Positions 58,414 to 63,097 are shown, counted from the first letter of the stretch. The stretch: 64,000 nt of DNA from Oikopleura dioica (GCA_907165135.1 OU015569.1:3658001-3722000), one strand, 5' to 3'. Notes: generated from the letters alone by a model not told the origin. Made by a program: numbers and translations.

Positions 58414-61400
58414 CTAGTTTCGGATAGTTATCGGCGGAAGAGGGGCCTGTTTCGGCTTTGGCTTCTGGCGCAGCGGGTGATCTAGTCCGATCCATATTCT
58501 GTTGTTAACGAGGGGCACGCCGCCGCACTCTTCTACTTGCAGCCCTTTCGTGTCAATTACTGTGTCCTCTTCTTCTTCCGTGTAATAACGAGGACGTGAT
58601 GACTGTATAAGCGCAATCTTCCACTTTGCGAATTCCTCAAGTCCGAGTTAGTCCTTGAATTGAACTCATTGAGCTCTACCTTTTCGGAAACATTCAATTG
58701 CGACTTGATCTTGTCCCTGACACTTCTGATCGTGTCCCCGTGGCAAATCTTGACAAAGAACGGCGTGCCGAACGCGTTCTGGACTGAGCTGTGGAAGTGG
58801 CCCACTTGGATGAGAATTTCCCCGGGCGCGAAGGATCTCTAAAATTGTCCGTAAATTCACCTCGAAATCGCCAAAACGAAGATTACATGTGCCTCTGGGA
58901 CTTCGTCGATTCTGATGTGTCGCTGATTGCTCGCACCGTGCGCCGCGTAGCTTGCAAATTCAACTTCTTTCGAATGAGCAAGAATGGTTATTATTCTTGT
59001 GTTAATGTACTAAAATAATCCCTGTTTTCTCCACCTGGATCGGATAAATATTTTACCTCAAGAATACGCAGCTCTGAATCACTGGCTAGGTCGGGAATTC
59101 TTGTGCGCACTTCGTCCAAAAGGTCTTTCATGGTAGATTTCGGATTCGCGTAAAGGATCATGTCAACTTCACGCATGTCTGCGAATAGGAACTTTATAGG
59201 TAGCTGGTTTTTTGTTTCGAATTGAGCAATGTCCATGCTGATTAACTAAACACTCTTGATATAGCAACAATGCCATGTATGAACTCACCTGATAGAACAT
59301 TTTCTTTCTATTTTTCTTGCTTTCGCGTTCACCTTGCATGTACATCATGAAGCGCTTGTTGTTGGGGAGGTAGATGATATCTTCTATTGTGCGCTTTTCT
59401 GATCAATATTAAATAAGAAAGAACCGAAACTTTTGAACATTACCAGTGCTTTTGACTACTTGGCCGATGCCGTCTCGTGCGTACGGCGGAACTTTGAAGA
59501 ATTGAATTCTCTTTGGATCCCTGTTGAGAACGCGGGCCACTTCACTCGCCATGTGCTGGTAATTCTAAAGAAAATAGAACTTTTTGCGCGCTGGCCGATG
59601 TTTTTTACCTCTCGCTGATTAAGCCTGACTACGAAGCCGGGATCATTGGGAATTTCAACATTGTGGAATACGACTTCATGACTGTTCGCTTGATCGCGGA
59701 AGTACTCGGCAACATTGCGAATACCAGAGGCTGGTTTCTCATTCGGATAAAGCTTCGGGTGTTTCTAAGATTAAATGGAACAGACTGAGAAATAAAAGCA
59801 AAGAGTTATTATGCCTGATATATTTACATAATCTACCTGAAATATCAAAACGACGCCGTCTTCGATATCGGCATCGTTTCCATTCGGCGAACCCGGACCT
59901 GTCGCCTTGAAAAAGGAGTGCTTCATTCATCGACGCGTTCAAGTCTTTCAGGTGAATGCAGTAGCCTAAATGCCGATCTTCAAACATGAGTATTTCGTCT
60001 TCTGCGGGTTGCTCATTCCAGAACGCCCTTCGCGTCATTTCTGGAATGAGATCTTTTAGCTTGGAGCTGATGGGCACGATCAGATGGCCGCAATAAGCAA
60101 TAGTTCCGCTGTCCGGGTCGAAGAGACGAAGGAAGATCAGCAAATCTCTTTTAGTATAGAAGGACTAGATTATTTTGATATTAAAAAACTTTAGCAACGA
60201 TAAATCGAACCTGAAGCTGGGCAGTCGCAACATTCGGTAGCTCGAGCCAGACTGTTGTAGAAGCATCTTGGCCATTCTGAATCGGCTAGTTGAGTTGAAA
60301 TGATATTAATAATATATGATAAGTGCAATATAAATAAAGCAAATATAAAAGTGCATACAAATCTTACGTTTTTGTAATCGATACTCACTTGCGAGACGTA
60401 CTTCTCCATATCATCTTCATCGATAAACTCTGGACGCCATGTCTCATGGTCCGCATTATTGCTGCGAATATACTTCCGTTTGAAAAACCAGATTCTGAAC
60501 GTTTCTTCGTCACACCCAAGGTAATCGGCTAGCTTAACTTTCAGCTTCGCCCAGCTCAAGTCCTTCCTGGCTTTGATTGTCCTAAACTTATTAATACCCA
60601 AGCACACCAGATAAACGAACCTAAAACTGATACAGTCTGGATCGATTAGACCAGAGCCCTGATGTCCACCAAATTGCTCATCAGAAATGATATTCACCGT
60701 CATAAAATAGTGAGCTTCGTTCTTTTCTTTTCGCTTGATCGCTTCAATTTCCCTTTCTTCAGTGAATTTAGTTGCCAAATGCACAGGAATATCAGTCTTT
60801 TCGGACAATTCTTTCAAAAGTGTCACCAAACTTTTTCGCTAGTTAGTTTCAATGGTTATTCAAGCAATTTTGAGCGACCCTTTCCGAAAATAATACACGG
60901 CAATTGGCTCTTCCTGATGTAGACGAGCATGTAAGCGTTTGTGCACGATTTGACGAAACCATTCTTTTCGTCTGTGCCCCCAAAGTTGGAGAGAATGGCC
61001 TCCTTCGTGTTACAACATGCAACAACATCGTCATCGAACTTGAACCACTTTCCGTCTCCCTTAGGATTAATATAAGCCACGTAATGGCCACCATAATTGT
61101 CACCAGAATGCACGAGAACAGCATGTAGGACATAGTCGGCGGGGTCTACAAAATGTCTACTTCAATAAAGCTTGAAATAATAACCTTCAGGATTCGCCTC
61201 TTCTAAAAACTCATCGAGATTGATTTCTTCTCCAAACTCGATTCTGTCGTTTATTTTAATGTTTGAATCAGTCATCGGGTCATATCTGGGCTCGGCAACC
61301 TGAGTACAGGGTCAGGGTCAGGGTCAGGGTTAAAAATTTTTTCTTGATATTTACTCAGGAACTCAGGTCAGGGTTTCTCACTCAGTCAGGTACTCAGGGT

Positions 61401-63097
61401 ACTCAGTCAGGCCTGCTCAGACTCAGGAACTCAGGTCAGGGTCAGGTGCCTGACTCAGGCCAAAACTCAGGGTTTTTCCACACATCAAAATTTTAACAAT
61501 TTTATTTTTCGCAGATAACATATAACTTTTAATCACAAAATCGCCCATAATACGGAAAATCAAGTGACAGTTGTATTTTGACCCCCTTGACGTTGCAAAT
61601 TGACCCTTTTTTGTGTTTTTTTTCGCTTACTCAGGCCCTGTGTGAGCAACTCAGGCCTGTCTTTTAACTCAGGTCAGGGTCAGGCTCAGGGTTTTTTTTC
61701 TCGGGCCTCGATTTTACTCAGGCACACAGGTCAGGCCCTGTGTACTCAGTACTCAGAGGCCTGACTCAGGGTTTTACTCAGGTCAGATTGCCGAGCCCAG
61801 GTCATATTGGAATCGCATCAACTGGATATGAAGAATAGGGGGAAAGTCCTTGAAGGTGACGCCTTTCTCGGCGTCCTGAAGTCCAAATTTACCAGCATCG
61901 AATTTATTGTCGCCTTCTAATAAGTCGGGCTTGACGTACTCCTGAAATACATCGTCGAGGAACTGCGGTAGAACGAGATCAATTACCTTGAAGGATTCAA
62001 TGATGGACTTGTTGTTTTTGATGGGCAGTGATATATCGTAGTAGATTTCCTCGCGGCGGGACTGATAGTCAACATTTTTACACTTGATGTAAGAAATTGT
62101 TTTAGCTTCGAACAGATTATTGATAGTGCCTTCGACGCTAGTACCCTTCATCTTTGATTCCAGATTATCTGAAATAGAAGTTAGCGGGCCATGAATACGC
62201 TCATTAGTGACCTAGCAGAACGCGGCAAAACTCTTGTACATCATGTTGCATGAATGAATCCAGGCTTTCCCAGCCAAAAGATTTGGTCAGTTTCTTCGTG
62301 CCGACGGGTTTGTCTTGAGATTGAATCTCGTAAAAGACGCGCTGGAGAGCGAGTGGAACGGACTGTTCGTCAAAATCTGTAGGCATTTGGTAAACAGCGG
62401 AACGAAGTTTTGTGGTGAAGAAAAGGGTCTGGAGTAAGGAGTTCATGTAGCAAGTTGCACCCTGGTTTTGAGTCCCACGTAGCCTGTATGTTTCTTGCTG
62501 TCCCAGGCAATGCCATGCGGAGCATCGGCGCAGACTTCCGCCTCGAAGGTGAGAGTGTAGTCCGGAGAACAATATCCTTTCGAAGGGTCGGTCGCATCTT
62601 CCCAAGATAAAAAGTGAGAGAATCCCCAGTCATTTTCTTTTGAGTGAAATATGTGGGTAATTCTCTTCGAACATTTGTCAATGTCGACGTTGTCGTTTGA
62701 CACATCATGTGGCAACACGCGCAAGTGCGCAGTAGCAGAGCAAGACCAGGTGATAGAGTCCGAGTCGGAATTGCACTGGAGAAAGTACCCGATAGACACT
62801 GTCTGGCCTTCACGATTCGGACGAGGCATCACCAAGATTTTCCATGGCAAGCCCCGAATGAAGTGAGCGGCAGAAGGGCTGGTCGATCCGTAAACAAGCT
62901 TATGAACATTTTTGACGACATGGCGAAACTTGAGTTCTGAAACTTCGAAGCCATCCGTTTCATTTGATCCGATTTCCGCGTCAGTACTACCAGAATCCAC
63001 CTCAATCTTTGAGAGCGACTCAGTTTAAACAACACTAGCGAAATGTTACCTTGATTGAAGAATCATTTTCTGCAGTGTCTACTTCCATAGATTCCAT
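58414..63097 (-). CDS. USP7: Ubiquitin carboxyl-terminal hydrolase 7; interrupted by a MITE and an apparent 1-nt homopolymer deletion
   Basis: MATH domain ([23 protein letters not shown]); Cys box [13 protein letters not shown]; [12 protein letters not shown]; His box [13 protein letters not shown]; [10 protein letters not shown]; C-terminal UBL repeats. Confidence 0.95.
61286..61800. mobile_element. 515-bp MITE (hAT/Charlie-like ends) inserted in a USP7 coding exon
   Basis: TIR CTGGGCTCGGCAA(C/T)CTGA; duplicated target GTCATAT (61279-61285 and 61801-61807); body built of TCAGGG/ACTCAGG repeats. Confidence 0.92.

Follow-up and report, generated by a model that had tools for sequence, protein, structure and literature searches.

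A young inverted-repeat transposable element in the catalytic exon of Oikopleura dioica USP7, a candidate intron

The window analyzed here is a 64,000-nt stretch of Oikopleura dioica DNA (GCA_907165135.1, OU015569.1:3658001-3722000), with all positions counted from its first letter. On its minus strand, from ~63040 to 58330, lies an orthologue of USP7, an essential and highly conserved enzyme, and a catalytic exon of this gene is interrupted by a 515-bp miniature inverted-repeat transposable element (MITE). The gene encodes MATH, UCH catalytic and USP7 C-terminal domains; its relatives carry the Pfam UCH, MATH and USP7 C-terminal domains, and the best PDB matches were to human USP7 (4e-46, versus 1e-12 for USP47). 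Nine introns of 39-74 nt were inferred, eight GT-AG and one GA-AG (74 nt, 60811-60884, minus strand). The interrupted exon runs from 61941 to 61185 and has 235 nt of coding sequence once the element is removed; its upstream part is at 61801-61941 (minus strand; EYVKPD...LMRFQYD) and its downstream part at 61185-61278 (minus strand; ...EEANPE). Upstream it is bordered by a 45-nt GT-AG intron (61942-61986, minus strand), the 15 residues of which are absent from homologues, and downstream by a 39-nt GT-AG intron (61146-61184, minus strand). The exons of this gene differ at 60 positions from those of a sister lineage (L001, 89.5% identical), and nearly all of these are separated by multiples of three, the pattern that third-codon-position changes would give, which places USP7 under strong purifying selection. 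A search of representative proteins returned no full-length Oikopleura USP7, and arthropod USP7s dominated a profile search with a 778-aa USP7 at its head, which yielded no public gene model.

The element occupies 61286-61800 and lies within the minus-strand gene. Its terminal inverted repeats (TIRs) are 18 nt long and complementary at 17 of 18 positions (94%). Read on the gene strand, the TIR at 61783-61800 forms the 5′ end of the element and starts CTGGGCTCGGCAATCTGA, and the TIR at 61286-61303 forms the 3′ end and ends ...GCCGAGCCCAG. Identical copies of a 7-bp target site duplication (TSD), GTCATAT (ATATGAC on the gene strand), are found at 61279-61285 and 61801-61807, and alleles lacking the element carry a single copy. 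The eighth base also matches, as the ATATGAC(C) of the preliminary description had it. Nine contigs of DNA run X25 derive from other copies of the element; eight of them cease to match the window at 61800-61802, the ninth at 61286, and these breakpoints fix the ends of the element and make a 7-bp duplication likelier than one of 8 bp. A TSD of 7-8 bp may fit the hAT or P-like superfamily. The element is non-coding, its longest open reading frame (ORF) being 67 aa and thus not of transposase size, and subterminal CTCAGG and GGTCAG repeats are abundant in it. The k-mer depth in X25 was 1200-4000 over the element versus 77-120 over the flanks, corresponding to ~10-40 copies per genome. With TIRs, a TSD, small size, multiple copies and no transposase ORF, the insertion is a non-autonomous MITE, as had been proposed. 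At up to two mismatches the TIR core had eight matches in the window, versus 0.83 expected by chance; there was no second full copy within the 64 kb, and an Rfam scan of the window gave no match. At four positions within the element (61503, 61551, 61736 and 61757), the base in the window is contradicted by all or nearly all of the X25 contig depth; this copy may differ from the family majority, or the assembly may be mis-polished there.

In the protein, the exon is broken after ...LMRFQYD. The element then adds LGSAI and a TGA (61783-61785, minus strand), the sixth codon past the insertion point and the first in-frame stop, which bears out the earlier statement that a stop arises within six codons; the reading frame resumes beyond the element. 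The insertion point aligns to D412|P413 of human USP7, in blocking loop 1 of the catalytic domain, a flexible hairpin past the LMRF strand that includes N418 and touches the ubiquitin tail. The length and composition of this loop differ between USP7 and USP47, and its length is variable among USPs. A scar of three residues would plausibly be tolerated here; it may also alter USP7 activity.

The insertion was supported by short reads. The locus is represented in six DNA runs (X25-X30). Contigs of X25 pass from unique exon ~28 nt into each TIR with zero mismatches, the reach into the TIRs being limited by k-mer uniqueness; record 8 consists of 60057-61299 followed by 14 masked letters and record 14 of 61772-63100. 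Because these contigs cross both junctions, a chimera of the long-read assembly, which the preliminary description had named as a possible refutation, is excluded, with the reservation that X25 may be the sample from which the assembly was built. An assembly artefact, by which long-read assembly put the element into a locus that in reality has no interruption, would be in keeping with a homopolymer error 660 bp away in the same assembly, at 62465, and with several element positions where no X25 contig supports the window base. Independent k-mer contigs that join unique exon to TIR on both sides and a perfect 7-bp TSD, the signature of real transposition, speak against it, and such an artefact is highly improbable.

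The empty site, which the preliminary description had suggested looking for in other assemblies, was found in L001-L006. Within the same lineage it occurs in metagenome contigs with 98-99% identity to the window, namely L002 (a Tara scaffold) and L003 (found in two samples). It occurs also in the sister lineage L001 and in the more distant lineages L004-L006 (~77% identity). These empty alleles read ...CAATATGACCCGATGACTG... with a single copy of the 7-mer. Since the site is empty in 98-99%-identical contigs and in sister lineages, and filled in X25, the insertion is recent and is segregating within the lineage. A 21-mer adjoining the insertion site had no match in JGI metagenomes.

Only the filled allele was seen in X25. 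Among its contigs there was no joint bridging the 522 nt made up of the element and one TSD, no contig break at the insertion boundaries, no contig of a second haplotype and no variant base over ~2.7 kb of flank. Genome-wide heterozygosity is put at ~3.6% in the published Okinawa O. dioica genome paper, presumed to describe the genome analyzed here. Flank depths were 120, 119 and 77, compared with 91.5 at another single-copy locus. The sequenced animal or animals thus appear to carry the filled allele only, as judged from assembled contigs and not from read counts, and the proposal of a null allele carried heterozygously does not fit these contigs. The absence of an intact allele and the strong purifying selection on USP7 together argue that the filled allele still works. 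If a chromosome present only in the filled state must still supply USP7, the element would most likely be spliced out of the transcript as an intron of 513-522 nt.

These observations bear on the chief alternative, that the insertion creates a loss-of-function or strongly hypomorphic allele: the element would not be removed in frame, and transcripts would end at the TGA or use donors internal to the element and then be degraded. Such an allele might be a deleterious polymorphism of recent origin, raised in frequency by drift in a laboratory line or present by drift in the sequenced individual. It might be tolerated thanks to an undetected intact copy or to maternally supplied product, or survival might not strictly depend on USP7. 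Identical TSD copies and near-identical family copies mark a very young insertion, and the site is empty in the sister lineages and in the wild contigs of the same lineage, as this alternative would have it. It fits less well with X25 contigs that lack an empty allele or second haplotype, since under strong purifying selection an adult homozygous for a null allele of USP7 would be unexpected. An intact paralogue would have produced an empty-site joint in X25, and no near-identical second copy was seen there.

To compare routes of removal, all donors starting with G, or AT, in the neighborhood of the insertion were combined with all AG acceptors there, and the combinations with an open reading frame were retained. 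As the preliminary description noted, the far TIR on the gene strand ends in CCCAG directly ahead of ATATGACCCG, so that a usable acceptor AG stands at the very end of the element. Together with one TSD, the element measures 522 nt, a number divisible by 3. Exact removal, leaving the protein unchanged, would require an AT..AG intron (CCA|ATATGA ... CCCAG|). Two options would skip 513 nt and add 9 nt: a GG..AG intron (CCT|GGGCTC ... CCCAG|), with the joint ...GACCT|ATATGAC... and the protein QYD-LYD-P, and a GA..AG intron (TAT|GACCTG ... GCCGAG|), with the joint ...CAATAT|CCCAGATATGAC... and the protein QY-PRY-DP. Three further pairs use exonic donors upstream, GC..AG at -9 nt, GA..AG at -12 nt and GT..AG at -15 nt. 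The last corresponds to the CA|GT donor said earlier to delete LMRFQ, which it does; all three would delete the conserved LMRF strand, and they were rejected as rescues. For the GG donor proposed earlier, the arithmetic of three added residues (YDLYDP) is correct and the donor consensus is matched at the first G only; for the proposed GC donor adding four residues, no in-frame +12-nt GC..AG pair was present in the enumeration. The exact AT..AG intron, the GA..AG intron at +9 and a strong GT donor past the stop had not been named. The nine registers of exact removal have the ends AT..AG, TA..GA, AT..AT, TG..TA, GA..AT, AC..TG, CC..GA, CT..AC and TG..CC. Read-through of the element was rejected because its sixth codon is a stop.

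Judged by the splice code, the allele would be null or leaky. The enumeration gave no canonical GT..AG pair that stays in frame and spares the LMRF strand. The donors of USP7 itself are near-consensus (G|GTAATT, G|GTAAAA and G|GTGAGT, with G|GAAAGG as the verified GA donor), and the strongest cryptic donor nearby, GA|GTAAAAC (61776-61777, minus strand), which resembles them, lies 23 nt inside the element and past the stop. Skipping of the 235-nt exon was rejected as a rescue because it would shift the frame, a point that also favors a null allele. With the evidence from both DNA and splice sites considered, a null or strongly hypomorphic allele is a serious contender, with a probability somewhat short of even.

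We consider that there is about an even chance that the element is removed in frame from the pre-mRNA, probably inefficiently. In this scenario, a young non-autonomous MITE would have landed in the blocking loop 1 exon of USP7 and would have supplied an acceptor AG at or near its 3′ TIR end (CCCAG| or GCCGAG|). As donor it would use a weak non-GT site where TSD and TIR meet, CCT|GGGCTC or TAT|GACCTG, either of which would add three residues; exact removal through CCA|ATATGA would be less likely. Pairing between the TIRs could bring donor and acceptor together; in a predicted RNA fold the TIRs close the element (-166.6 kcal/mol, z = -5.7). Candidate branch-point-like CTGAC motifs are provided by a (CTGACC)n tract (61310-61329, minus strand), 25-45 nt upstream of the terminal CCCAG, and these repeats could serve as branch points. 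Splicing would probably be inefficient, with much transcript lost through internal GT donors that retain the stop. That the in-frame options fall in a surface loop was counted in favor of removal. In addition, 11-12% of introns in O. dioica are non-canonical, and together with a spliced GA-AG intron in USP7 itself this indicates that the splicing machinery is permissive.

Transcript data for the locus came chiefly from a metatranscriptome (run X1). One contig of 416 nt, 100% identical to the window, covers 60473-61001 and is the only USP7 transcript contig from the same lineage. In it a 39-nt GT-AG intron and the GA-AG intron at 60811-60884 are both spliced, the latter with the joint 60810/60885 (record 1), showing that USP7 is transcribed and that its GA-AG intron is removed. 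The contig ends 280 bp before the element. None of the indexed RNA runs of this species contains the USP7 stretch; from two bulk RNA runs with the species label, X9 and X10, only five reads mapped, at 90-95% identity, to a 40-nt patch at 60013-60053. So few reads of such low identity indicate that X9 and X10 derive from another cryptic lineage.

Several points weigh against in-frame removal. No RNA read or contig crosses the insertion in X1, X9 or X10. The GG and GA candidate donors fit the consensus only at the +1 G, and the AT candidate fits at +2, +3 and +5 and fails at +1; GA|GTAAAAC and the many GAGT motifs inside the element all lie past the in-frame TGA. The predicted intron is ~10 times longer than the 39-74-nt introns of USP7, and both proposed splice sites would lie hidden inside the TIR stem. 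All wild contigs of the same lineage (L002, and L003 in both samples) are empty, and an exact look-up of both ORFs of the filled allele in a collection of 15 billion proteins found neither. Homozygosity is judged from assembled contigs, which can hide minor alleles, and X25 is possibly the same sample as that used for the assembly.

A variant of the proposal would make the TIR stem itself define the splice sites, either by exact removal at the base of the stem (AT..AG, 522 nt) or at a fixed offset, regardless of donor consensus; every new insertion of the family would in that case be an intron from the outset. Cited for it is the sole RNA-verified non-GT intron of USP7, which has paired ends. 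The first 11 nt of this GA-AG intron pair with its 3′ part, and a 5-nt GAAAG tail repeats its first 5 nt. The pairing is a single case with z = -1.2, the neighboring GT-AG introns are without it, and in this predicted structure the paired ends are a hint only. Splicing defined by the stem is unlikely.

The candidate may be compared with known transposon-derived introns, among them the introners of Micromonas and Aureococcus (Huff et al., 2016; Gozashti et al., 2022; reviewed in PMC11282704). In those, as here, a short non-autonomous TIR element and its TSD lie in a coding exon, with the terminal AG as one splice site carried by the element, while the other would be drawn from the TSD or flank. 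They differ in that element and TSD together are described as giving a proper GT..AG intron and exact removal, with thousands of proven intron copies, whereas exact removal of the USP7 MITE would need AT..AG, there being no GT, GC or GA donor in the right register, and it is a candidate intron only. In another larvacean, Fritillaria borealis, non-canonical introns derived from MITEs with TIRs and TSDs have been described, and its U2 spliceosome is reported to tolerate non-GT ends (Henriet et al., 2019, as summarised in PMC11282704 and PMC13326754). According to the same summaries most of these introns have AG-AC or AG-AT ends, and their splicing requires a modified U2AF/small nuclear RNA system; none of the nine exact-removal registers at the USP7 MITE has such boundaries. 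In O. dioica itself, G*-AG introns and rapid intron gain have been described (Denoeud et al., 2010, as summarised in PMC4122922 and PMC3443670), with ~12% of introns given there as non-canonical, these being enriched among new introns, and with transposon insertion named as one of the indirect ways in which Oikopleura has gained introns. A GA-AG intron of this kind is verified in USP7; its donor is otherwise near-consensus, unlike the candidate donors of the MITE. The MITE also differs from established introns of O. dioica in that it is still polymorphic and a candidate only. Insertions of Ds and dSpm in maize exons, studied by Wessler and colleagues in the late 1980s, are reportedly removed from the RNA by means of cryptic splice sites in or near the termini of the element. 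They resemble the in-frame removal proposed here in their partial removal through terminal sites, small in-frame scars and leaky alleles; they differ in being from plants and in having RNA proof, the USP7 MITE being a candidate.

Introns made by transposons are already established, and the USP7 MITE adds one candidate case. Its value is as a test locus, in an essential gene, with both alleles available and with diagnostic junctions. If the filled allele is spliced, the birth of a chordate intron would have been caught while both states segregate, and one could measure directly, in an essential conserved enzyme, which splice sites are used, how efficiently, and at what cost to fitness. If it is not spliced, this is an ordinary deleterious insertion, and reference gene models that bridge such elements are guesses.

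Further traces of the family were noted. A 189-bp element at 18143-18331 has related termini (CTGAGCTCGGCGACCTG ... CAGATTGCTGAGCTCAG) without a clear TSD and may be an older or deleted relative; no coding continuity was seen across it. Single TIR-like matches occur at 19604, 22882, 35415 and 38436. In the poly(A)-selected X1 metatranscriptome, contigs hold pieces of the family with foreign flanks (61339-61477 and 61689-61801), among them a 139-nt one with 100% identity. They were rejected as transcripts of the USP7 copy because they diverge at 61477 and 61801, which are not splice sites, and they thus come from other copies; they represent either family copies in transcripts of other loci or DNA carry-over in the X1 library.

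Three minor observations concern the host gene. At 62465 (gene strand CTCAAAACCAGG, ~62462-62473) the window has four A's versus five in L002 and in an X25 contig; the missing A causes a false frameshift after ...HTGYVGLK, at the catalytic Cys box of USP7, and its likeliest cause is a homopolymer error made in assembling the long reads. The X9 and X10 reads at 60013-60053 are flanked by unrelated sequence on both sides, and at this patch X25 depth rises and contigs break, so that it is probably a short repeat or conserved motif. Finally, L002 (484-491, opposite 62287-62361 of the window) is without 75 nt, or 25 codons in frame, of a conserved exon that is present in L003 and L001, which could be a deletion allele or an artefact of metagenome assembly.

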